From: Zootoca vivipara
Lineage: Eukaryota
NCBI RefSeq assembly: GCF_963506605.1
Contig: NC_083290.1
Coordinates: forward strand, 33,852,001 to 33,916,000
DNA length: 64,000 nt
Direction of reading: 5' to 3'
Position numbers and translations under genes: made by a program. Each line of letters opens with the position of its first letter. Position 1 is the first letter of the stretch. Below, in pieces: positions 2,114-60,694 of the stretch. Under the pieces are notes generated by a model. It saw only the letters and a program-made list of their open reading frames with translations, had not been told where the DNA came from and searched no databases.

Positions 2114-3282
2114 TAGCACTACAGTGCCACCTGGTGTCACAGCGTTATAACACATTTATAATGTTTTATTTTTACTAATGTAGCTGAGTCCTCAGCAATG
2201 TTCATACTGACTGGCTGAGGCTCTCCAGGGTTTCAGACCCAGCTTAGAGATGCTGGGGGTGGAACCTGGGACCTTCTACAAGCACAGCAGATGCTCTCCC
2301 ACTGAGCTAAAACCTCAGCAATGTAACATGTAGCACACACCAGCCAGTCACTTATTTCAAACCAGCAAATCTTAAAACCTTGCAGCAGCATTTCTTCTAA
2401 CATGATGGTGTACAGATTCAGGATGAGATTTTGCTAAATCCCAAATAGATGTTAAGCTACTTTATGAGTTACTTTGATGTTAGCAAATTTGTTTGTTTGT
2501 TTGTTTGTTTATTTATTTATTAAAAATGGTAGGCCAATGTTTGCCCATCTTCAATGTACGTGGGAGATTATTTCCCCCTCACAGTCCATGACTGTGGGCA
2601 GCTAAATAAATAGCGAGGGAGATAGTAAACTTGATTATTACCACAGTAACAGAAGAATGACTTATATAGGATCTTACAAATATGGCATCAGTTAGAACCA
2701 AGCTGGTGTCAGTGCTATCCTTAAAGAGAACCCACCTAACTAAATATATTGTCCAGCCCACATTTGATAGCATAGATGTGATTTACTACAGGGCCTTTTA
2801 AAAAAAGACAATCTAGAACTGCCTAATGGTATGTGATGATAATTTGTGCAAACATTGTATGTGGCTACAACACACACCTGCATTTTCCTTGTGGGTAAAT
2901 ATGTTCCTTTTTGCTTGTAGTTGCATTCCGTGACATTTAGAAGCCTATAAAGAGTGGGAGAAAGCCCTCAGAACTTGGAATTCGACAGCACTGATGTAGA
3001 AAAGTACCATATTTGCTTCTGATTAGAAACACTGGCTCTGTGGCGAGTACCACTGAGACAGCCAGGAGTGTCTTTGGCAAAGGGGGGGGGAGTTGGGTGG
3101 CACCTGGTTCACTTTTCACATTGTTATCAGTCCCTTTTACTATCACCTAACATCTGTCATGGCTGGTGCCCAATGTTGCTGGGAAGACAGAAAGGAGGGA
3201 GCCCAAACAATGGGTGGAGCCAGAGCCAATGACAGGCAAAGCCAAGTAATGCTACTTTTGCCCAGTGGCCTAACATGGGTTA

Positions 3283-3967
3283 CAGAGCTGTCTTAAGCGC
3301 CCCTGGCGCTGTGGTGCGCCGAATCCCTCCGACGCCCTCCTGCCCCGTTTTCCAGCGCTGTGGGCAGGTGGGCCCACAGCGCGGTTGCCATGAGCGCAGC
3401 TGCGCGGTGGACCGGCCAGGCAGTGGGGGTGGGCATAGCTGCCAAGTATCCCGTTTCCGCCGGGAAAACCCCTTTTTTCCTACTGTTTCCCAGCGGTCTC
3501 CCGTTTAGTTTTTAATCCCGATATTCTCCCTTAAATCGACTTCTGCCGGCGGCCATTTTTCTGGTGCCACTTTGCCCTTCTATGTGCACCAGAAAATGGC
3601 GGCGCCGGCGCCGGAAGTCGCTTCCGCGCATGACCGGAAACGCGTAAAAGTGACTTCCGGTGGCGCTTTGCCCTTCTATGGGCATCAGAAATGATGGCGG
3701 CGGTGCCGGAAGTCGCTTTTACGTGTTTCCGGTCATGCGTGGAAGCGACTTCCGGCACTGGCGCCGCCATTTTCTGGTGCCCATAGAAGGGCAAAGTGCC
3801 ACCGGAAGTTGCGTTCACGCAACTTCCGGTGTCGCGCGCTGCCGATCCCGGATCTTTCCGTCCAGGACTTGGCAGGTATGGGGGGGGGCGCAGCTTGCGG
3901 CGCCCTCCTGGCGGGCTGGCGCCGTGGTGCCCTGCGCCCCCCCAGCCTGAACGTAGGGCCGGCCCTG
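3283..3967 (+). mobile_element. GC-rich hAT-like element (CAGGGCCG family), middle layer
   Basis: Ends CAGAGCTG...CGGCCCTG; perfect TSD ATGGGTTA (3275-3282/3968-3975); homologous to 49814-50095. Confidence 0.8.
3434..3880 (+). mobile_element. hAT-like element (CATAGCTGCCAAG family), copy 2, innermost layer
   Basis: TIR CATAGCTGCCAAG...CTTGGCAGGTATG; TSD GGGGTGGG/GGGGGGGG. Confidence 0.8.
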
Positions 3968-4555
3968 ATGGGTTACCAGTGCCCAGAGCCGTGGCGGGGG
4001 GGGGGAGGAAAACAGATGGAATAAGCATGCACGTTCAACTGTCTAATGGCATCCACATCACCTGGGAGACCACAGCTGCAGAGATAAGAAAAGAAGAGTT
4101 GTTCCATTGTCTGGAGAGGTCACTTCCTGGCTTGCATAAAGAAGCCATTTTCAATGAACCCAGCAATAGAAACACACAGCTGTATTGAGGCAACTCCGGG
4201 TGTTGAAATCTTGCGCCCCTAACAATTTTGCACCCCTGGCAACTGCCCCTATGCCTCCCTACACTACGCCACTGCTTTTGCCCCACCCTCCTCCCTACTG
4301 AGTTCTGTAGGGGCAACTCTGGGACAATGGAGGGGAAGCTGACAGGCAGTGCCATCATCTGGACTGCCTAGGAGTAGTTAGGTGGGTACGAGTTGGCTGA
4401 AAGCAGACTGAGACTGATGGGTCATTGTCCTATTTGGCCTAATGAATCAGCCTCCAATATCGCACAGCATATGGCTTTTGCATGACTTGAATTTTGGAAC
4501 TGCCCAAATGTTCTTTCTTAGCTTCCCGTTTCCCCCCTGTAACTGCCCTGTCTGG

Positions 4556-5365: not shown

Positions 5366-6219
5366 TGCTACCTCTTGCCTTGCAAACTACCTCTTGCCTC
5401 AGTCTTTGCCCATCTGGTCCCAAGTTGGCTGGGGCTGATGGCAGATGTGGTCCAAAACATCTGGGAAGCACCAGGTTACAAGGCCTCCTTTTCACTAAAT
5501 GCATAGCATGCAACTATGTCTGCAGGCTGCTGTTTTTTTTTAAATTATAGATGGGGGTGGGGGTGGGGGGGTTGTGGTAAGGACCACAGTGCACAAGGAA
5601 GGGAACTTTATTCCTTCCCTCTCCAGCAATTGGGACATGTTTCTGTGAGGCTTAGCAGACAAAATTACCATCGATGCCAAGGGCAACTTTTTTTAAAAAA
5701 AAGTTTCATAGCTGGCGTGGGCTGGGGGTTTAATTCAGATTGTGGCTGGGGAATTGGGGGGTGGATTAAAGCTCCCCTCCTTGCATTCTGCACACTGTGC
5801 ACTTAGCACAATGTAAGCCGACCCTAAAATTACCCAACTGCACCACTGGAGAAATGGAGATTCTAGGACTGCACCAGCTGGAGTCTTGTGTGTGCCTGTG
5901 TAATGCACAAACATGCCTGTTTGCGTGCGCTCTCTCTCTCTCTCTCTGCCCTGTTTTGAGGATTAGGCTGCTGTTGTGCCATTACTTTGATTTAGCATGT
6001 ATTTAAAGGTCGCCAGGTGATGTAGTGAAACGGCTCGCGATTCAACAGCACTGACATCGGCTCTGTTTGACCTTGCTGCTGCAGTTAATTAACTTGTGTT
6101 GAGATAAAGCTGGCTGTGACTCCTTCCAGCAAAGGCAGACTTTTATTTCTCCAGTCTATTGTCAGCGGAGAGGGAAGTGGAGACTTAGCTGAAGCCTTCA
6201 CATCTCTTTGTAGGCTATA

Positions 6220-7776
6220 CAGTGGAACCTCGGTTTACGAACACCTCGGTTTACGAATTTTCGGTTTACGAACCATCATAAACCGGAAGTGTAAACCGAG
6301 GTTTCCAAGGCCTGGGCCACAGCTGCGGAGGTGCTCTGATGCCTTCGCGAGCACAGAGCGATGCAAGCGCGCACAGAGGGTGCCGTCTGCTTTCCCCTCC
6401 TGCTCCCGACGCCGCTCCCCGACTCACCTCCGCCACCACCGAGCCAGGCTGCCCGCCCTGCTTGGAGTTGATCCGGCGTGCCTGGCTGCCGCCTCCTTCC
6501 CCGACCCTGGCGCTCGCCTCCTACATGCCCGCCTTGCTCCTTTTAACTGCCGGGCTTATTTATTGGGGGGGCATTCATACCTCGGGGCCGCGCAGAAGCT
6601 TAAAGCGGCGTCCGTGAAGCTTTCGCCAACCCCTGACCCAAAGCAGCTCCCGCCGGCAGAGGCTGTGGCCTTCGAAGGAAGCGCTTTCTTCTTCAGGGCG
6701 CTGCGGTTCGTTTAAAAGTGCTGCCGGGAACTGCACCTCCGCGAGGGGATAAAGCGCAGAGCCAGGGATTCTTTCGAGGGAGAAACGAAACGGCAGAGGC
6801 TGTAGGAATCCGGCTCATTTCGATCCTCTCAGGGAAACTTCCATGTGCTTTATCCCCTCGCGGAGGTGCAGTTACCGGCAGCCCTTTTAAACGAACCGCA
6901 GCGCCCTGAGGAAGAAAGCTGAGGATGAGCTGCCATTGCCGGGCTACTGCATGCCCAGCAGGGCCAGGATCTCGCGACGCTGTTGCCCACTGAGGCGTCA
7001 CTGCTGGGGTGGCTGCTGCTGCAGGCAAGAGGCAGCCTGCTGCCGGTCAGGGCGGGTCATGTCCGGGGCTGAGGTCTTCCCGGCAGCCCCTGCGAGCAGG
7101 GCCAGGATCTCGCGCCGCTCTCGCCCGCTGCGGCGTCGGCTGCTGCTGCTGCTAGCAGCAAGAGGCAGCCTGCTGCCGGGCTGCTGCCGGTCAGGGCAGG
7201 TAATGTCTGGGGCTGAGGTCTTCCCGGCAGGGCCAGGATCTCGCACCGCTCTCACCCGCTGAGGCGTTGCTGGTGGGGCGGCGGCTGCTGCTGTGGACAG
7301 GAGGTGGTGGCGTGGTTTGACGCCCGGCGGGCCCAGGGCTCTCCCACCAGCAGCAGCATGAGGAAGAGCAAGGGGATTGGGGCTGGCAGGAGCCGCATCC
7401 TGGCGCCCAGCTCGGCAGTGGTGGCAGCAGCAGCCCGGCCAGGACGCAGGCTGATCGGGCGCGCCGCGGCCGGCGGGGCGGCCCTTTAAGCGGCTCGAGG
7501 CGGGCTAGGCAGCCGCTCGCTTCCTCCAGCCCTGCCCTCCGCCGAGCGACGGTGAGGGGCCCTGAGCACGTGCAGAGTGCCTCCCCTCTGCCAGGAGCGT
7601 AAAAGACAGTAAAATTTGTGTTGCCTTAGCCCCCTAAGGCATCGTTTTTCCTCGTCTGGAACGGATTAATCCACTTCCCATTACTTTCAATGGGAAAGTT
7701 TGCTTCGGTTTATGAACACTTCGGTTTATGAACAGACTTCCGGAACCAATTGTGTTCATAAACCGAGGTACCACTG
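6220..7776. mobile_element. Tc1/mariner (pogo/Tigger-type) non-autonomous element with ~1.3 kb GC-rich captured cargo
   Basis: TIR CAGTGGAACCTCGGTTTA...TAAACCGAGGTACCACTG, TA on both sides; ends match the 241-bp element at 40350-40590. Confidence 0.85.
6950..7398 (-). pseudogene. Captured BMP8-like (BMP5/6/7/8 group) exon-1 fragment, partly triplicated
   Basis: From ATG at 7398: MRLLPAPIPLLFLMLLLVGEPWARRASNHATTSCPQQQPPPHQQRLSG*ERCEILALPGRPQP; copy 2 RRSGRERREILALL/GLPGRPQPRT*PALTGSRLP; resembles recalled BMP8 [31 protein letters not shown]..SRLP; stops fall at CGA>TGA-type positions. Confidence 0.7.
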
Positions 7777-8063
7777 TATTGTGATGCTTTGGTGGGTAAT
7801 TACCGAGGGTAATTATCATCCAGGGCCAGCTCCAGGTCTGAGGTGGAGCCCTTCTGAGGGGAGGGTGCTATCATGCCTTACCTGTTGAGTAGGGCAGGGG
7901 TTCCCAACAAAATTTTCTCGAGGACCCCTCATTGAGCCGCTATTGTGACAAGGACCCCCATTAATTCCGGCCATGACAGCAGATTTTTGCCCTGCTTCAG
8001 GGCGGCAGCGCCCGTTGGCGAGCTTGGCTTTCGCGCGCTTTTTCTCCCCTCACGAGGCGGAGC

Positions 8064-8634
8064 CAGGGGCGTACCCAGGATCAAAACTGGGGGGGCAGGG
8101 GGGGCAATGCACAGTAGGGGAGGGGCCACATGTATCCAAATTTTGCAGTGATCCTCCAAAACAAAGGAGAATGCAAGTAATAGGGAAACATGTGCTTCAT
8201 AATGAATATATTGGTGAAAATAACATACAAAATGCAGAAATTACTTGCAAAAATGTAATGTCACACAAGAAGCTTTAGAAGAAATGTGCATTGAAAGGCT
8301 GCAGTTTTTTTGAGGGTTTTTTTAAAGGAAAAATTTGCAAATTGCTAAAGAAACAACCAAATTTAAGATTGGAAAAATCAGGAAATGGAGAGAAATGAAA
8401 TGGACAGGTACTCACAATACTGCATCACTGTGTTCAGAGATGTTACTGACTGACAAGCCTAGGAAAGCTTGCAGTGGGAGTGAATTTCAGAAAACACAGA
8501 AAACACATCCCAAACTTTCAGTGCATAAAAATTGAGAATGTCAGCAAAAGGGAATCTAAGCAAGTGTCATTTTCATGTGTGCCATTTTTTGCATAGTCAG
8601 TTGCTGCTGTTTAACGTGGTGAGCAAAAACAAAC

Positions 8635-8676
<42 letters not shown>

Positions 8677-9251
8677 GCTCTGCTCCCTTGCATTGACATG
8701 GGGGGGGGGAGGTTTGCTCACTAAATTCCTGCACAAAATTACCTAAAAACATGCCAAAGTGTCATCTAAAAGCATGCCACGGGCACGTAGGAAAATGAGA
8801 GGAAGCTGCGACTGGGGACTTCTTTCCGGGCAAGGGCGGAAAGAACGAGCCCCACATAGCAGTAGCAGCAGCAGCTCTTCCCTTTGGCTTGCTGGGCTGC
8901 TGTTGTTGCCCCTCCGGCCAGCCTGCCCCGCGCCCTCCAGCCTGCCCCGCGCCAAGGAAGAAGCCGGCCAAGAGCAGCGCTGCCTGCGGGGCTGGTGGGC
9001 GGAGGTGGAGCACAGCCCAGCGGAGCAGAGCGCGAGTTCGGCGTTCCCGCAACGCCACGCTCTCTGGTTCCCCGCCGCGCTTGGCCTTGCCGGAGGGCGC
9101 GACGGGGAGCTGGAGGGAGGACGCGGCGCGGCGGGCGGGAACGGTGAACTTGCGCTCCGCTGGGCTGTGCTCCGCCTCCGGCTCTGCCCACCAGCCCTGC
9201 TTCTAGGGAGGGGCAACTGCCCACCCCTTCCCCGCGCTGGGTACGCCCATG
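8064..9251. mobile_element. Nested hAT-like element carrying mixed genomic cargo
   Basis: TIR CAGGGGCGTACCCAG...CTGGGTACGCCCATG; perfect TSD GGCGGAGC (8056-8063/9252-9259). Confidence 0.85.
8635..8675. repeat. (TAT)n microsatellite
   Basis: Direct read. Confidence 0.95.
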
Positions 9252-10898
9252 GGCGGAGCAAAGAGAAGCTGAATGAGGCGGAGGGAAGAGCCTTTCCGCC
9301 TCCGCCTCATTCAGCTTCTCTTTGCTCCGCCTCGTGAGGGGAGGAAAAAGCGAGCGAAAGCCAAGCTCGCCAACGGGCGCTGCCGCCCTGAAGCAGGGCA
9401 AAAACCTGCTATCCTCTTGTAAAAAGCCGCGGGGAGCACTGGGCGGCGGGTGGCGGGCAGGCTGGCCAGCGCCCCTCCATTCTGGCTCCGCCAAGTTGCG
9501 GGCCCCTCTGGCATAGCTCGCGGACCCCTGGGGGTCCGCGGACCACCTGTTGGGAAACACTGGAGTAGGGAAACAGTGGCTGTACTCTGGTGAACACTCA
9601 GACACTTGGAGACTCCATTTAAATTTCCCAGAGTGCCCCTGATGTAGTATCACTCTAGGACTGCGTTGGGAACCTAAAACGACATTTCTAGCATGCCTGA
9701 AACTTATTGGAGCACTGCAAACGTCTAGCTCAGGTATGGCTGCCATGCACTCTGCTTTACAGAGCACATCCGTGTATTTTTGGCAGGGCTGGGTGGTGGG
9801 TGGACTTCCAGCCCATGGACCTAATCTGGCCTGCCAGGCTTCCTTATCTGGCTTATCATAGCATTTTGGGCAAGCCTACTCCTAACATCACACATATGTG
9901 TTGCATATGCATTCTAACACTGTGACACCAGAGGGTGCTGTGGAGTTCCGTTTTTGCCAACCCAATTTCTCCTACAAAGTTTACAATGCGTTGAACTGAA
10001 ATGCCTTTTTGATATGTCTAGATCCAGCCATCTTCTTTAAAACCACACCAGCAGTTTTTTGGGGGGGTTTTTTTAGGAAGAGCTGGGACTGCCCAACAAC
10101 TTGTTGCTCATGAGGCTACTCCTCCAATATGGACCCCCTTTTTCAGTTCTTGCAGAAACCCCTTGGATTACTTGGCTGTTGGGCACCAGTAGTTCTTCAG
10201 TCTATGTGCCAGAGGGCGATCTCTCATCAGCTTTTGCTTACTGGGGCCTTAATTATTCCATCCTGGTGTCTTCCCTCCTCCTCCTCCTCCTTTTTGGATA
10301 TGGTGAAATGCAGTTAACAGTTCTCTATGGCACTAAGAACCTGGTGATGAAGGGTCCTTGATTATAGCCAGCCAGCTCTTTTGGCCTCAGACACTTGACT
10401 GGAAATAGCTGCCGTGTTCATTCTTTCATAGCCTTCTCTGTAGAGGATATTCAAAGGCTGGGCTCCAAGTCTATGATATCCTGGAGAACTAGGGAAAGCA
10501 AATGTGTTAGAAAAGAATGTGGCTCAAAGGCCAACTGGCTACAGCTCAGTCGGAAAAGATGTTTAAAGCTGTGGCCCAAAGACCATGAACCCGAGAGAGA
10601 GGAACCACAGAAGCTTATTCTTTTAGATGTTGCCAAGGGCTGCATCTTATTCTGTATGTAGATCCAATGGTATAAAGTAAGCTAACAATAGCATTTGTAC
10701 CTGGCTAACCATTGTGGCAAATCATCTGAACAAATGGTGGGATAGCCTTAACTATGTTTTTTTCTCACAGCAACCTTCTGGGCTAGACCATCATTATTTC
10801 CGTTTTTCAGAAGGGACTGCTGAAGCTGAGACATAATGGCCCAGTGTGGACATCATGCTAACCCATAGTTTACTGCTTTAAGATTAAGCCTTGGTGAG

Positions 10899-12289
10899 CA
10901 GAGCTGGCCCACCTATGAGGTGGGGTGAAGGAGCCACCTCAGGTGGGGGCCTTGCCCACCTCATTGCTTCCACTGCTGCTCCAGGTAAGTGAGGCTGTGG
11001 CGGTGGCAGAACAGCACAGTTTCGCTTATTTATTTTATTTCATTTTATTGAATTTATATACTGCCCTATACCTGAGGGTCTCAGGGCAGTTCAAAGAATA
11101 GAATCAAGATATAAAACCACAAAGTACATAATAAAAACCCAATAGCCCCCCCCAAAAAAACACATTTTAAAAGGGCATAGTATGTCAATCAGATCAACCA
11201 AAGGCCTGGTTGAAAAGGAACATTTTTGCCTGGCGCCTAAAGGTGTGTAATGAAGGCGCCAGGTGAACTTCCCTGGGGAGAGCATTCCACAGACGGGGAG
11301 CTACTGCAGAAAAGGCTCATTATTGTGTGGCCACCCTCCAGACCTCTTGTGGAGGAGGCACACAAAGAAGGGCCTCAGAAAATGATCTCACCCACTAGAT
11401 TATATGGAAAGAGGCGATACTGTGGCCCTGAGCAGTTTAAGGCTTTATAGGTCAAAACTAGAACTTTGATTGAGCCCGGAAACTAGCCAGTGCAGTCGGA
11501 CCAGGATCAGTGTAATATGCTCAAACTGTCTTGCTTCGGTGAGCAACCTGGTTGCTGAATTCTGCACTAGCTGAAGTTTCTGAACCTCCTTCAGAGGCAG
11601 CCCTACGTATAACACATTGCAGTAATGTAACCTTGAGGTTACCGGAGCATAGACAACAATAGCTAGTCTATCCCTGTCCAGATAGGGGTGTAGCTGGGCC
11701 ACCAGCCGAAGCTGATGGAAGCCACTCTGGGCCACTAGGGCCACCTGAGCCTTGAGCGACAGCAAAGGATCCAGGAGGACTCCCAAGCTACGAACCTGCT
11801 CCTTCAGAGGAAGTGCAACTCCACCAAGAGCAGGTGATCTCCCATCCATCTTGTCTAGGGAACCACCCACTAACACTGCCTCAGTCTTATCTGGATTGAG
11901 CTTCAGTTTGTTGGCTCTCATCCAGTCCATTATCAAGGCAAGACACTGGTCCAGCACTTCCACTGCCTCACTTGTAGATGTAAAGGAGAAATAGAGCTGA
12001 GTGTCATCAGCATACTGCTGACAATGTACTCTGAACCTCCAGAGAACCCCACCCAGTGGTTTCATGTTGGTCTCCACCCCACCTGGGCAAAGCCTTGCCA
12101 TTCGAATGCCCCCTCTGACTGAGAATCTCAGCAAGAGGGAGGCATTTCAGTGCACAGCTCAGCATCCCGGTGGGGTGGCGAGGCTTTGCAAGGGCTTTTC
12201 CTTGCGGGGAAGCTCTTGCAGAGTCTCATGTCCCCATCACAGGGGCAGCAGTGAGGCCTCAGGCACCAAAACATCTCGGGCTGCCCCTG
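10899..12289. mobile_element. hAT-like element interrupted by an L2 insertion
   Basis: Ends CAGAGCTG...CTGCCCCTG; perfect TSD TTGGTGAG (10891-10898/12290-12297). Confidence 0.65.
11027..12085 (-). mobile_element. 5'-truncated L2 LINE (RT C-terminus plus 3' tail)
   Basis: ORF 11445-12134 has QQYADDTQLY, WMRANKLKLNPDKTE, LGVLLD, KLQLVQN motifs typical of L2 RT; (AATAA)n tail. Confidence 0.9.
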
Positions 12290-20521: not shown

Positions 20522-20815
20522 CAGTGGTGCCTCGACTTACGAATTTAATCCATTCCAAAGGCACCTTCGTAGGTCGAAAAATTCATAAGTCGAAAAGCTC
20601 CATTGGAAACGCAATTTCCCATAGGAATGCATTGGAAACGGAAAAATTCATAAGTCGAAGCAACCCCTTCTAAAAATTTGTAAGTCAAAAAAACTATCTA
20701 AAACCGCCACAGTTTCCGTTCGGATGTCGATAAATTCGTAAGAATGCGGCCATTTGCCCCATTCGTAAGTCGAAAAATTCAGTTGTCGAGTCGTTCGTAA
20801 GTCAAGGTACCACTG
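20522..20815. mobile_element. Tc1/mariner (pogo-type) MITE
   Basis: TIR CAGTGGTGCCTCGAC...GTCAAGGTACCACTG, TA TSD, internal TTCGTAAGTCGAA repeats. Confidence 0.9.
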
Positions 20816-21266: not shown

Positions 21267-21659
21267 ACCTAGATGGACCAGTGGTGTGATTCAGTCTAAG
21301 GCAGCTTCCTATGTTCATATGGGTCAGGGAAGAGCTGTAGCTGAGTGGTAGAGCACATGTTTTGCATGCCAAAGGTCCCAGGTTCAGTCCCTAGCATCTC
21401 TAGGTATGGCTGGGAACTAGCTCCTGTGTGAAACCCTGGAGAATCACCACCAATCAGTGCTAGGCAAGATAGACCAATGGTATAAGTTGCTATAGGGCAG
21501 CTTCCTATGTTCCCCTACCCAAGTGCTGAGATGTTCAATCCAGTTGCCCTCACCATTGACTGCTTTTTTAAAAATAAAATAAAATAAACAAGCTACAAAT
21601 GGTGGGATATCCTATTTGTTCAATTTAGCCCTTTGGAGGACACTATCCTGCATTGTGTT

Positions 21660-33215: not shown

Positions 33216-34439
33216 GAAGCTGACATCTCTCAGTGGCTTCCCTAATCCTTGTTCGTGGACTGACGGTGACGGCTTCAGCAGTCCTTTTGCAAGGAACACC
33301 TTTTGCTCCTTGTTTTGCTAACTTAGCACTAAACTGGAAGCATGTTAAATGGAAGGTGCTGCTGCAGGGCTAACCTCTGTAGAGGGTTTAAGTTAGGGTT
33401 CACCAAGCAGGCCCCAAATCTCCAGAATCGACTTTCACATACCTAGATCATGCAAAATAAGGAAGAATCAGTGCCATCGGTTAAAGTGATTTATAAAAGT
33501 ATGAAACGCCCTGTCCTAAGACAAAATGAAGACTATCTCACTTGTGGACTAAAAGAATCTTTCAATATACACAGAGTGCATTTCTTTAATCCATTACAAA
33601 GTTCACAGGCCTGCTCCACATACTGTATCTGGAATCGGAGGGCACGGCTGCCAAATCAAAGGGCATGGCTTGTCATAGCACCTCTCCTTTGCTGCATTAG
33701 GGAATAATAACAACAGCTTTCTCTACTGAATGCTAAGCAGCGCAGCCTGCCGCCTAGACTGGTTGCACCGAATGAGCAAAATAAATCCACCCAATGTCTT
33801 TAGAGACTCTGCACCTACCCAGGGGGAGCAATTTTTTCCAGGCTTCATCCCATGTGTCACTTTTCCTCCACAGGCATACAGTGACATAGGAAAACACCTA
33901 TATACACTGCCATCATTTCATGTAGACGCTCACAGTGAAAAATGGGGGTCAAGTGGAGAGTGGAATTGAGGTCACAGCCATATTTCTCCTATCCATCTCC
34001 ACACCTTCAGCTGAAGATGCGCACAAGGTCTACCCCATGTCTAAGTTGTACACCTGTGGGCTCTCTATGCGCAGTTAGGGACCTTGTTCTGGACATTATA
34101 TTAAAAGTGGATGGTGTATGGACAGGAGAGGGCAGGATCAAGCCTTGCTGCCTTGCTCCCCATGTTTTGGCTTAATGTCTGAATAAACTTGTGTGTGTGC
34201 AAACTGCACATGTGACAAGGACCCTCACTTTTCCAGGGTATCATGAAGAGAAAGCTCAATTATGTGCAAGAATTCTTTAGGTGAACCAGTGGAGGTCAGG
34301 CGCAAGCATAACAGGTGTGATCCTAGTTATCCCCCCCACACGTGCACACTGAACGTCTGGATGGTGAAAGCTCGCTTTCCGCCAGCTTCCAAATTGGTGA
34401 ACTACAAACGGTTCTCTTCATGGGTGAGAGAGGAGCACA

Positions 34440-35720
34440 GCAGCAGAAAACCCTAGTCGGACTCGTCCTCAGGTTCGCACGCAGGGACGTAGGTCAGGGG
34501 CGGACCCTACTGCCGCGTTGCCCCTCCCACACCTCCCTGCGTTTGTTCTAACGCGGGCAGAACACGCACCCTGCCTTCTCACATGACAACGGTGCACGCT
34601 AGCGGAGGCGTTTCCCTTACTTCTCATACACGCGTGTAGCAAGAAGATTACTGTATCAGGCGGGCAACGGAGGACCCCAACGGGTTGTGATTATTTCGCG
34701 CGTCGGAATTGCCCTTGCGCCCCGAGCGGGTTGCAAATTCAAATCGAGTCGCGTTGACTGGCGACTTGATCCGGCGTGAGCCAGCGAGAGCGCTTCCCCC
34801 CTGCCCCTCCGTGGGGCGACAGGGGCGGGGAGCAGCTCGGCAAGCGCGTCCCTCCGGCGTGGCTGCTGGCGCCGTAGCCAAATCTCGCCCGCCCCCCATC
34901 CTGGTTCGACTGCAGCCAACTCCTCTCGACCCGCGCGTTCTCCGGGCGAGGCGGGTCGGCGTCTCTTTCAGCCGCCGCTGGGGGAACCAGCAGCCTGACA
35001 AAGGGGCCGGGGCAGCGGAGTTGAAGCAAGTTCCACGGCGTGGCGGCTTCTCGGCTATCGCGCCCGGGCGAACAGGCACCAGCCAGGCGTCCGGAGCAAC
35101 ATCAGCATCAGCAACGTGCTTGCTCCGCCGGGAGTCGCTCCAGAAGTGCTGCGCTCGCCCGTGAGCAATCGGCGCCTTGGAGTTGCTTTTCCCAAAGTGC
35201 CGGAGCTTGCCTGGATCGCGTGCCTCTCCCTCTCCCCACCCCTCCCCTGCTGAACCCGAGGACCGCCTCCCTTCCCTCTCGCCACGGCTGGGGGCAGGTC
35301 CCCGGAGCCGACCCGCCCCCCTGCTGGGGAGCCGCCGCGAAAAGGATTCCGCTTTCCTCTGCTGGATGCGTCCCTGGAGGAGCTGAGCCATGCGGCGGCG
35401 GCTCCCGCTTTGGCTCCGGAGCTTCCTGTGCTTCTTGCCGGCCTTGGTGGGACCCGCTGCAGGTAAGATGCGCTTCGCAAGCCGGGCGCTTCGCTCCCAG
35501 CGCCTGATCTGAAGATCTCCTGTTAATACTCCCCTCCCCCCTTACACCCCCCCCAAAAAAAAGAGCTCTCGGGAGAGACCGCAGCTCCGGAGCTCCCCGT
35601 CGTCTAAGGGAAAGCGCAGTTTCTGGGCACAGCTGGGCAGGAAAGTAACATTCAGAGGCGCACGATCCGGATGCGTTTGGCTTCCTTTCTTTTGGAGACG
35701 GGTCCCTTGTTGTCCGGGGA
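34440..35720 (+). promoter_or_regulatory. CpG-island promoter and 5'UTR
   Basis: Dense CpG over ~1.3 kb with no TIR/TSD, GC boxes (about 34822, 34888, 35312), E2F-like TTTCGCGC at 34694-34701, encloses first coding exon. Confidence 0.85.
35390..35462 (+). CDS. First coding exon of a secreted or type I membrane protein (signal peptide)
   Basis: GCCATGC Kozak context; MRRRLPLWLRSFLCFLPALVGPAA+G has basic n-region, hydrophobic core, small-residue cleavage end; strong donor CAG|GTAAGA, phase 1. Confidence 0.8.
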
Positions 35721-38215
35721 TCCTGCGGTTGGTCAAGGCCAGGGACAGCTCAGTGCGCCACAGTTCTGGAGTTTGGTGGATCTCTAGTTGCAATTGTATC
35801 ATATCTTTTCGCTCTGGAAATCTGGGAGCAGGGAAACACCGAGGGAGGTGGCTAAAGGCTGCCAGGCAATCTCTGGCACCCGCTGGAGTAAATGGAGAGC
35901 CATGCTTTGGGGGTGGTAGTTTCAAGTCTTGATGAAAAGGCAAGAGGGGTTGGTTGATGTTGGTGATTACGACCCTATGAAAGGATGATAATGGGAGACC
36001 GACAAGAGGGCATTCAGGTCTGGGCAGTGTGGGAAGGAGGTCCTCTTTTTTCACTGTGTCCCCCTTCCTCCCTGCCCCATTCTTGTCTTTGTGAGTTTGT
36101 CCAGAGTCTGTTAGACCACCAATCCTGACCCACTGTGTGTCACTTCGTAGATCATTCCCTTTACAGAGCATTTGTCTGTGTAGGAAGATTGGAGCAAAAC
36201 ACGTGCAGATTCTCATGAAAGCCCGTTTGTAGTTTGCCATTATTTTTGTGCCTGCGGTGCATACAACATGCCGGGATGCTACATTTATTTTTATTTTTTT
36301 TCTTCTGGTGCACGTTTGATCCACAGCAAAATATATGCACCTGCAGTGGTTGCGCTTTCCCTGTCCGAAAGGTGTAACATGCAAAAAAGTGCTGTGCATA
36401 TACTCCCCAATGCGCAGCTGCCACGTTGTGGAGTCAACTCCCCCTTCCATGTCACCCAGAATTGAGCACTCTGCCTGCGTGCGGTGAGATCCAGCCTCAC
36501 CCAGAGGCTCTTCTGCTTTGCACTTTCCATTGAGGTAACAGATGGGCCCAAGTGTGATAAAAAGAAGTGCACACAAGGGGATGTGACTGGGTAGAGAAGA
36601 GGCTGTCAGCTGGAGGGTGACTGACCTTTCAGATCCCTGACAATTGAAGGCTCCAGGCCTCCCCTGGCTTGGGGTTCGCACACAGCTTTCCTTAGCAAGA
36701 TTTGTACCAGTCCTTCTCTCTGTGGCCAGAGACAGTGCTACGGTTTTCTGTATGCTCTTTATTTGCTTCCTACCAAAGCCCTTAGTAGTCTCCCTCCCCC
36801 TTTTCTGTGCATGTGTGCGGAAACAAAAATCTTCAGGCCACAAACTCTCCCAGAATCTGTCCACTAGAGGAGGCATCAAGACACACTTTGGAAAAGGATG
36901 CAGCAGCCCGAGGGTACAGCTGGAACCATTGTATGTGTTGGTTTTAAAGCAAAATCAAAAGCTGCAAAACATGCAATGTTGGAAATAAAAATAACCCATC
37001 TTTATTTACCATGGAGGGAAAGTGAGGGATTTTTTTAAAAGTGTTTTAAATTATGGGGCAGTAAAGTGTTCTTGTTTAGAATTTAGGCAGATTTGGTGGG
37101 TGGGTTGGGGGCTGAGAGCTGAGAGCTGAGTTCCAGCTCTTTAGGAGTGAACGGAAAAGAGTTTCAGCATCCCTCTGACCCCCCCCATCTGAATTTCATT
37201 TACAGATGTGATTTTTGTCACTGAAACTTGAAAGGTGATCAGTTTGAGGCTAGTTCTGTCCTGGAGGGTGGGGTGGAAAAGACAAGAAAGGTGAGATTCC
37301 TAGAATTTTATTTTTAGACCCCCCCCCCAAAAAAATTATTACTTGGCCATCTCATGCCTTTAAGAAGCAACCGCTGACAGTATATTCTTGTTGGCGAGGA
37401 GCAGAAAGTTCCATTGAGTGTGGGGCTGTGGACGAGTGTCTCGACCTAGGTCCTTTTTATTACATTGAATGCTATCAAATCTGTGAATGTTGCATGCCAG
37501 TTAGTGCCCTCGCAACTGGCTGTTCCCAATCTCCTGTACTGTGAACATCGAAGGAATGATTTAGTCTGAATGACAATGGCTGCTGAAGGATAATGCCAAG
37601 TGAAAGGCGTGATGGATTCACATTTGCAATGTTTTTTTTTTAAGGGGGGGGGAATGTGACTGATTTTTCATTGCACGTTGCTTCCAGCTGAGAGCAGGCG
37701 CTGGCAACAGGATCCGAGGGAATATGCTGCTCCTGCAAGCAGGGCTGTCGATTAGCTGTGTGTCTGTTCTTAGATCAGCAAACAGGAGCCTGTACTGCTT
37801 CATTAATATTTGCGAGTGTGCAGAGAGGAAGCTGAGTAGACTCCCACAATGAATAAAGTATAGGGTTTTTTTTTTTTAAAGAATTAAACCTGTTGGAAAC
37901 GACACTGATTCAAAGGTTGGCTTAATTCTGCCAAACCCAAAACTCTGTGACCTTTGGTATGGTATTATTAGGGTAAGATCAGAATCAGATATTGTTGGCC
38001 TTGCAGGAAGCATGTGCAAGATAAACTGTGGATGTCAGAAACTCACAGGTACTTTTACTCAGAAGTAAGCTTGTAGTGTATTGAATGAGAATTTTCTTCC
38101 AGGAAAGTGTGTGTAGGATTGGAGCATAAAACCATAAACCTAGGCACACTTTCTTGGGAGCAAGCCCTATTGAACCCGCTGTGACTTGGTTCCAAATTAA
38201 CATACCGTACATAGC

Positions 38216-40349: not shown

Positions 40350-40590
40350 CAGTGGTACCTCGGTTTAAGAACAGTCCGGTTTAAGAATGATTTGGTTTAC
40401 AAACTCTGCAATACCAGAAATAGTGTTTTGGTTTGAGAACTTTACCTCGGTCTAAGAACGGAATCCGAATGGTGGAAGGGCACCGGTGGCGGGAGGCCTT
40501 ATTAGGGAAAGTGTGCCTCAGTTTAAGAATGGTTTTGGTTTAAGAATGGACTTCCGGAATGGATTAGGTTCATAAACCGAGGTACCGCTG
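40350..40590. mobile_element. Tc1/mariner (pogo-type) MITE, short relative of 6220-7776
   Basis: TIR CAGTGGTACCTCGGTTTA...TAAACCGAGGTACCGCTG, TA TSD. Confidence 0.9.
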
Positions 40591-49233: not shown

Positions 49234-49375
49234 AGAATCATAGAATTGTAGAGTTGGAAGGGGGCACAAGTGTCATATATTCCAAGCCCCTGCAAAGCAG
49301 AATTATTTTGCCCAACGTGAGACTCGAACCCACAGCCCTGAGATGAAGAGTCTCATGCTCTACCAATGGAACTGT
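49234..49375 (-). mobile_element. tRNA-Lys-derived SINE with CR1-like tail
   Basis: Minus strand GGTAGAGCATGAGACTCTT..GGGTTCGAGTCTCACGTTGGGC then CCTTCCAACTCTACAATTCTATGATTCTA. Confidence 0.75.
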
Positions 49376-49813
49376 TTGGACAGAGGCCGGCACAGTTAGG
49401 GGGATGGAGGATGAAATGCGTGGCATGCTTGCAGCTCTATCTTCCAGCAAAAGGGAGCTCATGAGGGACAGCTGGGGGACTGTCACCGCTGCCCCTTAGT
49501 ATTTTATTCCCGGGAATCATCTCAAACCATGAAAAAACAACATTAAAACACATGTGAATACAATCTCTATGTCAATGTATTTAGAGGATTGAAAATCTCC
49601 ACTTAAAAGGCTTGTTGGAAGAGGAAGGTCTTCGATAGGCACCCAAAATACTGCAAAGAGGGCACCTGTCTGATATGTAATGGGAGGGAGGTCCAGAGGG
49701 TGGGCGCCACACTCTGAAAGTACGATTCCTACATCATACAAAATGGACTTCCCAATAAGAAGGCATCTGCGGAGTGCAGTAGTGAACTGGATTGCAAGGG
49801 CGGAGACTATATT

Positions 49814-50095
49814 CAGGGCCGTCTTAAGCGCCCCTGGCGCTGTGGAGCGACGGATCCCTCTGGCGCCCCCCCGCCCCGTTTCCCAGCGCGGTGGGCAGGC
49901 GGGCGGGCGCAGCGCGGCTGCCACAGGCGCTGCTGCACGGCGGGCAGGCAGGCACAGCATGGCTGCCGTGGGCACAGCTGCGCGTCGAACCGGCGGACCG
50001 GCCGGCCAGCGGGCAGGCGCAGCTCACGGCGCCCTCCTGGCGGGCCGGCGCCGTGGTGCCCAGCACCACCGGGGGTCTACCTAGAGCCGGCCCTG
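49814..50095 (+). mobile_element. GC-rich hAT-like element (CAGGGCCG family) inserted in an old minus-strand L2 (about 49500-50330)
   Basis: TIR CAGGGCCG...CGGCCCTG; perfect TSD ACTATATT; KLQQVQNA motif in the flanking L2. Confidence 0.85.
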
Positions 50096-50340
50096 ACTAT
50101 ATTTTAAGTATCCTGGTCCCGAGCTGTATAAGTCTTTGCCTATCAGTACAACAAGCACCTTGAGTTTAGCCTGGCAACTAATTGGCAGGTGGCAGCAGTT
50201 TTTCAGCAGAGGCATAATAGGACAGCAATGGTCTGCCCCAATGAGCAGTTTAGTCACTGCATTTTGCACTTGCTGTAATTTATGGGCCTTGCACTTGGAG
50301 TACATTGCCATAGCCCAGCCTTGAGGTTACCATTGTTCTG

Positions 50341-53071: not shown

Positions 53072-53228
53072 NNNNNNNNNNNNNNNNNNNNNNNNNNNNN
53101 NNNNNNNNNNNNNNNNNNNNNNNNNNNNNNNNNNNNNNNNNNNNNNNNNNNNNNNNNNNNNNNNNNNNNNNNNNNNNNNNNNNNNNNNNNNNNNNNNNNN
53201 NNNNNNNNNNNNNNNNNNNNNNNNNNNN
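53072..53228. other. Assembly gap (N run)
   Basis: Run of n characters. Confidence 0.99.
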
Positions 53229-59452: not shown

Positions 59453-60449
59453 CCTGCAGATGATGGCGATTGAGACAGGGACCTTTCACATGCAATGCTC
59501 TATCCCTGAGCTGCAGCCTTTCCCCACTGTTTAGAGCATGAAATGCTAGGCTAGGTAGATCCTTAGTCTTATCAAGCAGAGGTTGTTAACGACTTGGCAT
59601 TTGTAAATCACCAGAAAATGCACACACATAAATGCCATTCTCAACAACCATTGCAAAAAGAATGTAGGCTAGCAGCCGATGTTCACATTAGGCAGAATGT
59701 GGTGGTAGAGTTCCTTGGGCTGTGCCACTTGAGATGGCAGGGGGGGGGGATGATGGTCCTATTTTCAAATGCTCGCCAATACAAAATGTTCATTGCATGT
59801 TGAAAGCAAGCACGTATGGTTAGCAACAGCCATCTCCCTGATGTGCTAATTTATTACCAGCAGGGAGGTGTGTTATATGGGTGAGTATTCAAAAAGATGT
59901 GCACATACATATATAGACACTCCAGAATTCTACAACCTCGTTTATACCATCTCATTTTGGATAATGAGTAGAATGGCTCTCAACCTCTGGAATTTTTCAT
60001 ATGGCTGACACAGCCTCTTTTTTTTTTTTACAAACTCTGAAACAACCCATCTAATGACATCTTTTAGTACGCTGTATCTGGAGGCAATGAAAGTGGTGTT
60101 TATTTAGGCACTTTTAGACTCTGGATTTGCAAGTCTTGTGTGTGTTGTGGTGGTGAGGGGAGGGTTGCCCTTCAGATGGCGATGTGCATTACTTCACTTA
60201 TTTCAAAATGTGGTAAGCCACCCACCCCCCAACGCTGCATTTGGGAACTTTCCTGCTCATTCTGCTGAGTGGGGCCCTGGACCTCTGCCCCCAAAGGCCC
60301 ACTCAGTGGGGATGGAGTCTTTTGGAGATCAATTTGAGGGCTGGGCTGAGTCTTGGCCTAATGTTGGAACAGGGAGGCTGGTGTGCTTACCTAGGAGTGC
60401 CAGTTTTAAAGGGGAAATCATTCAAAATGCTTCTACAGTCATGCCTCAT

Positions 60450-60694
60450 GTTACATCCGCTGCGGGTTATGTCTTTTCAAGTTACGGACGCGCCGAACCC
60501 GGAAGTCCTGGAACGGGTTACTTCCGGGTTCGTTGCGCGTGCATGCGCAGAAACACTAAATCACACTTTGCGTATGTGCAGAAGCGCCGAATTCCGTCAC
60601 ATGTGTGTGCAGATTTGGCACTTCAGGATGCGGCCTTTTCATGTTGTGAATGGGCCTCCGGAACGGATCCCGTTCGCAACCAGAGGTACCACTG
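60450..60694. mobile_element. Pogo-type MITE, left end degraded
   Basis: Right TIR GCAACCAGAGGTACCACTG+TA, matching the left TIR at 41556. Confidence 0.75.

Follow-up and report, generated by a model that had tools for sequence, protein, structure and literature searches.

At positions 6220 to 7776 of the 64-kb stretch of lizard DNA that was analysed as a whole (the window), a TA-flanked element opens on the plus strand with CAGTGGAACCTCGG and closes with CCGAGGTACCACTG. Its inverted ends (6217–6244 and 7752–7779) are 28 nt long and 93% complementary, and TA stands immediately outside CAGTGG...CCACTG at either end, a 2-nt repeat that would be weak evidence alone. Both the ends and the TA dinucleotides were read where a preliminary description of the locus had placed TA-flanked TIRs. 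Several 16-nt subterminal repeats of the CGGTTTAYGAAC type occur at both ends, and TRF recognised a tandem array at 6227–6273 within the left one. The TIR pattern was found 6 times in the window, where 0.00 occurrences were expected by chance, and one TIR pair encloses a complete, TA-flanked short MITE of 241 bp (40350–40590); the left end of our element resembles positions 40350–40404 of that MITE and the right end positions 40505–40590. In reads from the same species, both ends gathered summed depths of 1e5–4e6 (1e5–1e6 over the left end), the mark of a very abundant family.

The TA duplication and the CAGT-type inverted ends are Tc1/mariner hallmarks, and the sharing of these ends together with the duplication points to a MITE family as found in the Tc1/mariner superfamily. 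By its TA duplication and terminal sequence, the only characters used, the element is thus classed as a non-autonomous Tc1/mariner element, as the first half of the earlier label “mariner/pogo-type MITE” had it; the second half would correspond to the finer, putative term “pogo-like” for a CAGTGG-ended element. No transposase sharing these ends was found within the 64-kb window.

Table 1. Parts of the TA-flanked element, in window coordinates
Feature	Positions	Strand	Basis or remark
Left TA target-site duplication	6218..6219	.	TA directly before CAGTGG
MITE left end: TIR and three 16-nt subterminal repeats	6220..6273	+	TIR pair, repeat family
Inverted MITE-like piece (ATCATAAACCGG...TAAACCGAGGTTTCC), fold-back of subterminal repeat	6274..6305	.	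Inner boundary approximate
Cargo piece 1, GC-rich, without coding start	6306..6682	-	CpG o/e 0.82
Cargo piece 2, inverted duplication	6683..6919	.	76-nt arms, 95% complementary, 85-nt loop
Three decayed tandem units of ~135 bp	6925..7300	-	Unit 3 incomplete
48-codon ORF: ATG, hydrophobic signal-peptide-like stretch, CPQQQ..., TGA	7255..7398	-	Translation
GC-rich DNA upstream of the ATG	7399..7654	-	Putative leader and/or promoter of parent gene
MITE right end: TIR and subterminal repeats	7655..7776	+	6273->7655 joint, TIR
Right TA target-site duplication	7777..7778	.	CCACTG then TA

Elsewhere in the window we noted two remoter MITE relatives (20540–20815 and 60440–60694), which have CAGTGGTACC ends and other subterminal repeats. 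A 445-codon open frame on the minus strand (35542–36879), long for chance in DNA of 48–61% GC, matched no Pfam family and scored low for protein-likeness in a protein atlas. Also on the minus strand, 11445–12134 holds a fragment of a reverse-transcriptase ORF (RVT_1, E 6e-8). The tRNA-like matches at 21331–21402 (+) and 49309–49381 (-) may be SINE heads, and a run of 157 N occupies 53072–53228.

The GC-rich interior of the element

We mapped two contig sets (X1 and X9) and two raw RNA-seq runs (X16 and X17), all from the same species, onto positions 5700–8300. The common form of the MITE, which would usually be some 190–240 bp long, joins 6273 to 7655 via 12 bases, GCCGCGGACCCA, that are absent from the element described here; this joint was supported by 465 + 25 reads in X16, 154 + 34 reads in X17 and 9 contigs in X9. 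The dominance of the joint indicates that ~1.38 kb has taken the place of the MITE centre at this site. Within this insert, the fold-back piece (~32 nt) lies in a bin of high depth (6222–6308), and depth falls from 6309; once the piece is subtracted, the true cargo comes to ~1.35 kb (~6306–7654).

With a GC content of 0.656 and a CpG o/e of 0.74, as opposed to CpG o/e values of 0.21 and 0.36 in the two flanks and 0.38 in the whole window, the cargo is CpG island-like in composition. It contained no match to a transposase or to any other Pfam family, and a transposase remnant was ruled out as its source by this lack of a Pfam match and by the CpG-island composition. With GC-rich foreign DNA in place of the middle of a MITE, enclosed by transposon ends and a TA duplication, the locus can be classified as a Pack-type element, and the earlier claim of a Pack-type capture is supported by the TIR ends, the TA duplication and the CpG island-like, non-transposon interior.

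The interior is built of several pieces. On the minus strand of cargo piece 1, near 6428, stands a splice-donor-like GGCGGAG/GTGAGT. The inverted duplication at 6683–6919 has a DNA fold of -106.8 kcal/mol (z -18), and one 1058-nt contig matches 6726–6845 alone, with ~90% identity, a hint of a parental copy elsewhere in the genome. At the other end of the cargo, CpG o/e is 0.72 over 7300–7654, the last ~55 nt of the upstream piece (7600–7654) being AT-richer filler.

Five further CpG island-like blocks (GC>=0.58, CpG o/e>=0.65) were seen in the 64 kb, at 901–1300, 3201–4200, 8701–9700, 34401–35800 and 49601–50300, and the block at 8701–9700 sits in a hAT element. So many islands in a transposon-rich stretch would fit repeated capture of CpG-island DNA. 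Within a GC-rich block, long inverted repeats are nested at 3559–3820: one pair has 102-nt arms that are 92% complementary and lie 45 nt apart, and two further pairs accompany it. The nest is rich in CCGGAAGT and ACTTCCGG motifs and is built like the hairpin at 6683–6919.

Reading frame, tandem units and likeness to BMP8

On the minus strand, the signals named in the preliminary description (a TATA-like CTTAAA at 7490–7485, an Inr-like TCAG at 7454–7451, the ATG at 7398–7396, the signal-peptide ORF and three tandem copies) were all present. The ATG, in the context CCAGGATGC, is intact and has A at -3, and the 48-aa ORF that it opens reads MRLLPAPIPLLFLMLLLVGEPWARRASNHATTSCPQQQPPPHQQRLSG, with SCPQQQPPPHQQRLSG after the hydrophobic, signal-peptide-like core, before it ends at a TGA (7254–7252). 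The three tandem units are spaced 131–138 bp apart; across their breaks they read ...QRRLSGRERREILALLGLPGRPQPRT.PALTGSRLPLA, and the longest stop-free stretch over them is 168 aa.

Each unit is damaged in its own manner. Unit 1 has lost 9 nt in frame (LGL), carries an 11-bp duplication at 7170–7190 and shows TGA and TGC in place of the CGA and CGC of unit 2. Unit 2 reads RRRSGRERREILALL, after which 4 extra nt (GCAG) shift the frame to GLPGRPQPRT, a TGA and PALTGSRLPLA. Unit 3 likewise has TGA instead of this CGA and ends abruptly after ILALLG. Between units 1 and 2, identity is 89%, and CpG-type transitions make up 7 of the 13 mismatches, which fits the decay of a methylated repeat after duplication. 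The broken reading had been attributed earlier to CGA-to-TGA stops and a frameshift; the frameshift is there, and the stops at 7254–7252 and 7000–6998 align to CGA in another unit, but the TGA at 7059–7057 aligns to TTA in unit 1, so that CGA>TGA does not explain every stop.

In BMP8, of the BMP5-8 subgroup of the TGF-beta superfamily, the start of the prodomain shows a signal peptide followed by CPQ, RRL.G.RERR, (D/E..Q)REILA.LGLPGRP.PR and SRLP. The cargo has the same order (signal peptide, CPQ, RRL.G.RERR, EILA.LGLPGRP.PR, SRLP), and its ILA (not ILS) and LPG (not LPH) are residues of the BMP8 rather than the BMP5/6/7 type. Against this BMP8 sequence, ~21 of 25 aligned residues are identical when CGA-derived changes between units are allowed. 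The cargo differs from it in lacking a stretch of four residues after RERR and before EILA (DVQR in the human protein), in spanning ~70 codons only, without the latency lasso, furin site or cystine-knot domain, and in a reading broken by stops and frameshifts.

We measured this likeness by frameshift-tolerant protein-to-DNA alignment, using as the query the BMP8 motif as quoted in the preliminary description rather than a database sequence. Against the cargo the motif scored 59, in an alignment ending at 7063 on the minus strand, in unit 2. Permuted versions of the motif scored 35.6±4.4 (maximum 55), none of the 300 reaching 59; the motif itself scored 33.8±3.9 (maximum 51) against 150 composition-matched resampled cargos, and at most 35 against both strands of the window outside the element (128 kb). 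The match is therefore a clear outlier within the window and collinear beyond chance, for a motif that was quoted, not drawn from a database, and chosen after the fact.

Database searches, for which separate pieces were used (the joined reading was compared in the frameshift-tolerant alignment only), returned no relative. Four stop-free pieces gave sub-threshold noise alone in Pfam at E<=10 (GemA, DUF2380), neither pieces nor profiles found a BMP prodomain among PDB sequences, the protein atlas offered no usable match, and the BMP7/8 motif strings were not found in full-text literature. Nothing matched the 48-aa ORF or a 108-aa antisense ORF in a set of 5.8 billion proteins; that search covers proteins of 0.55–1.75 times the query length, so that full-length BMPs (~400 aa) lie beyond its reach even from the 168-aa stretch. 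A 49-column mosaic profile found no BMP or TGF-beta match among 1.84 billion representative proteins, and its two matches, tandem-repeat proteins that sum a short ERERCEI-like match, were rejected as spurious. Since the stop-free pieces hold at most ~24 homologous residues, such blanks were to be expected and carry little weight either way.

These data bear on whether the capture is real but its likeness to BMP8 fortuitous, the cargo having come from one or more other CpG islands. GC-rich DNA encodes peptides rich in R, P, G and L, the similar stretch is ~25–35 residues long and is obtained with one frameshift and the reading through of a stop, Pfam, PDB and the large databases gave no match to TGF-beta family members, and among the permutations of a motif that was matched after the fact one did score 55. 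A chance origin of the likeness nonetheless has to contend with a score above 300 of 300 permutations, 150 of 150 resampled cargos and the best value outside the element, as well as with the order of features of BMP8 and the A in ILA and G in LPG, which fit BMP8 over BMP5/6/7. We consider chance rather unlikely and, on the strength of the quoted motif, a BMP8-type origin of the 5' fragment likely. For the earlier description of the cargo as BMP8-like, the motif score thus speaks in favor and the blank protein searches against.

The BMP-like reading covers ~35 codons of the prodomain and stops short of the conserved PLFMLDLY, with no splice donor at its end, and the furin site and mature cystine-knot domain are absent from the cargo. 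An end at this point makes it a gene fragment, not a member of the TGF-beta family. A native BMP gene at this place was rejected: the flanks are single-copy but the cargo is not, the reading stops short of PLFMLDLY with no donor, and transposon ends bound the block.

Copy number, transcription and template

In the X9 contigs, fifteen cargo bins had summed depths of 242–1464, against 10–21 in the unique flanks. Single X9 cargo contigs had depths of 54–249, and a 164-nt contig over 7249–7412 with two differences had a depth of 187; up to 7 variant contigs were seen per cargo site, and a two-unit form of the cargo was also found, its joint (7012->7161) skipping one tandem unit. In the shallower X1 set, the ratio of cargo to flank depth was ~3–10. 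The excess over unique flanks amounts to some 10–70-fold, although a depth summed over contigs does not give a true copy number. No second copy of the cargo exists within the 64-kb window. An even excess across the cargo, set against single-copy flanks, is best accounted for by cargo-bearing copies numbering from about ten to several tens, and the element is thus probably multicopy; so many copies would in turn mean that the chimera moved after it had formed.

The depth could instead stem from parent loci and other repeats, the interior having been filled in at a single locus by gap filling independent of transposition. Nearly all Pack-TIRs in 100 animal genomes are single-copy (4/370 multicopy; PMC8277862), depth summed over contigs cannot be equated with copy number, and no contig joining the cargo to a different flank was seen among those mapped, as follows from the breaking of contigs at MITE ends. 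A handful of parent loci would, however, yield an excess of ~2-fold, whereas the 10–70-fold excess is fairly even across the 15 bins, including those without simple repeats; near-identical contigs of 113–164 nt over the ORF have 5–20 times the flank depth, and X1 contigs cross the boundaries between cargo and MITE (6279–6416 and 7421–7682) at more than single-copy depth. A single-locus origin therefore appears improbable to us, and we favor a multicopy element.

For transcription we relied on the two RNA-seq runs (tissue unspecified), ~6% of each of which was read. Essentially no reads fell on 7092–7613 (depth 0 over 7440–7613 and at most 0.2 over 7266–7439), and traces at depth 0.5–3 lay on part of the remaining cargo. 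The near-absence of RNA from the ORF and the DNA upstream of it leaves the capture of a working promoter, as claimed in the preliminary description, unsupported; the TATA and Inr motifs on which that claim drew are weak consensus matches. Were the captured 5' end nevertheless to work, the element would be spreading an active promoter and a signal-peptide exon. Its CpG-island character, the intact ATG (A at -3) and the 48-codon signal-peptide ORF would suit such a role, and a proportion of animal Pack-TIRs is reported to be transcribed (PMC8277862). The depths just given (from ~6% of each run), the closure of the ORF after 48 codons by a CpG-decay stop, the frameshifted units and the weakness of the TATA and Inr matches all argue otherwise, and we regard an active promoter as very improbable. 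The BMP-like fragment looks dead, with no sign of function.

A pile of RNA reads less than 90 nt wide was observed at 6396–6482 (25 reads in X16 and 4 in X17). Every one of these reads differs from the element at 6450 (T>C) and at 6467 (G>C), both variants being common in the DNA contigs, and the two fixed differences identify their source as another copy or the parent of this piece. A short expressed exon ~97% like 6396–6482 exists elsewhere, perhaps in the parent gene.

As to the template, the BMP8-like piece might derive from mRNA or cDNA rather than from genomic DNA. It starts in a possible 5' UTR, which might account for all of the 250 bp upstream of the ATG, and it ends within exon 1, so nothing in the piece demands genomic DNA. 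On the other side stand the absence of poly(A) and of an exon-exon junction, as well as the exon/intron-like junction GGAG/GTGAGT (~6428) in a neighboring piece of the cargo, a donor-like junction that favors genomic DNA as the source of at least some of the mosaic. We consider an RNA template for the BMP8-like piece rather unlikely, the piece itself being compatible with RNA as well as with the DNA-level capture put forward in the preliminary description.

Proposed origin and known counterparts

Our overall reading, which we hold to be somewhat more probable than not, is that a Tc1/mariner-type MITE had its middle swapped for a GC-rich mosaic of host DNA, including a BMP8-like 5' end, and was then multiplied. 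In this lineage, the 12 bases in the middle of the MITE would have been replaced by ~1.35 kb of GC-rich host DNA, probably during repair or replication with several template switches, since such switches would account for the fold-back of the MITE, the inverted duplication with 76-nt arms and the presence of at least three unrelated pieces. One captured piece would be the 5' end of a gene for a secreted protein (leader, ATG, signal peptide and ~35 prodomain codons), broken off inside exon 1 and afterwards triplicated in tandem. With both ends retained, the chimera could be mobilised by a transposase acting in trans, and it may by now number from about ten to several tens of copies. Within the window, its copy is decaying through CpG-to-TpG stops and small indels, and transcription of it was not detected.

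The capture of gene fragments by DNA transposons has been well studied in plants. Like the Pack-MULEs and other Pack-TYPE elements of plants (Pack-CACTA), the lizard element carries GC-rich 5' gene fragments, of which a plant element often holds several, and would share with them amplification by a transposase in trans. Unlike them, it is of the TA-duplicating Tc1/mariner type rather than Mutator or CACTA, its host is an animal and it comes with no evidence of expression.

In animals, to our knowledge, gene-fragment capture has been catalogued at scale only once. That survey reported 370 Pack-TIRs in 100 animal genomes, 115 of them in TcMariner elements and four multicopy; one of the multicopy cases, from a frog, is a hAT element that carries a 5'-UTR fragment of 291 bp and occurs at three loci, and gap filling and fork-stalling/template-switching were proposed as origins (Tan et al. 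2021, Nat Commun 12:4280, PMC8277862). The lizard element resembles these Pack-TIRs in that non-autonomous TIR ends enclose duplicated, non-transposon host DNA, in a breakpoint in the middle of the transposon, in template switching as the proposed origin and in a cargo drawn from the 5' part of a gene, comparable to the CAPSL 5'-UTR piece of the frog (PMC8277862). It differs in copy number, the four multicopy cases among the 370 having few copies each whereas depth here suggests ten or more (PMC8277862), and in its cargo, which combines three or more pieces in a mosaic that includes a fold-back and an internal tandem triplication. The main text of the survey mentions no squamate case (PMC8277862).

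On its own, the copy in the window is a decayed, silent fragment; what sets the element apart from its known counterparts is solely the apparent number of copies and a cargo that is mosaic and triplicated. It adds a vertebrate (squamate) example of gene-fragment capture followed by apparent spread. A broader idea, which at present we find doubtful, is that pogo-like and hAT MITEs in the lizard lineage pick up CpG-island 5' gene ends time and again and, in contrast to nearly all animal Pack-TIRs described to date, multiply them to tens of copies, some of them perhaps active or exapted. If this were true, the present element would be one instance, and such MITEs would have dispersed possible promoters, along with first exons for signal peptides, through the genome. 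The element also hints that lacertid lizards could be well suited to the study of how such chimeras form.
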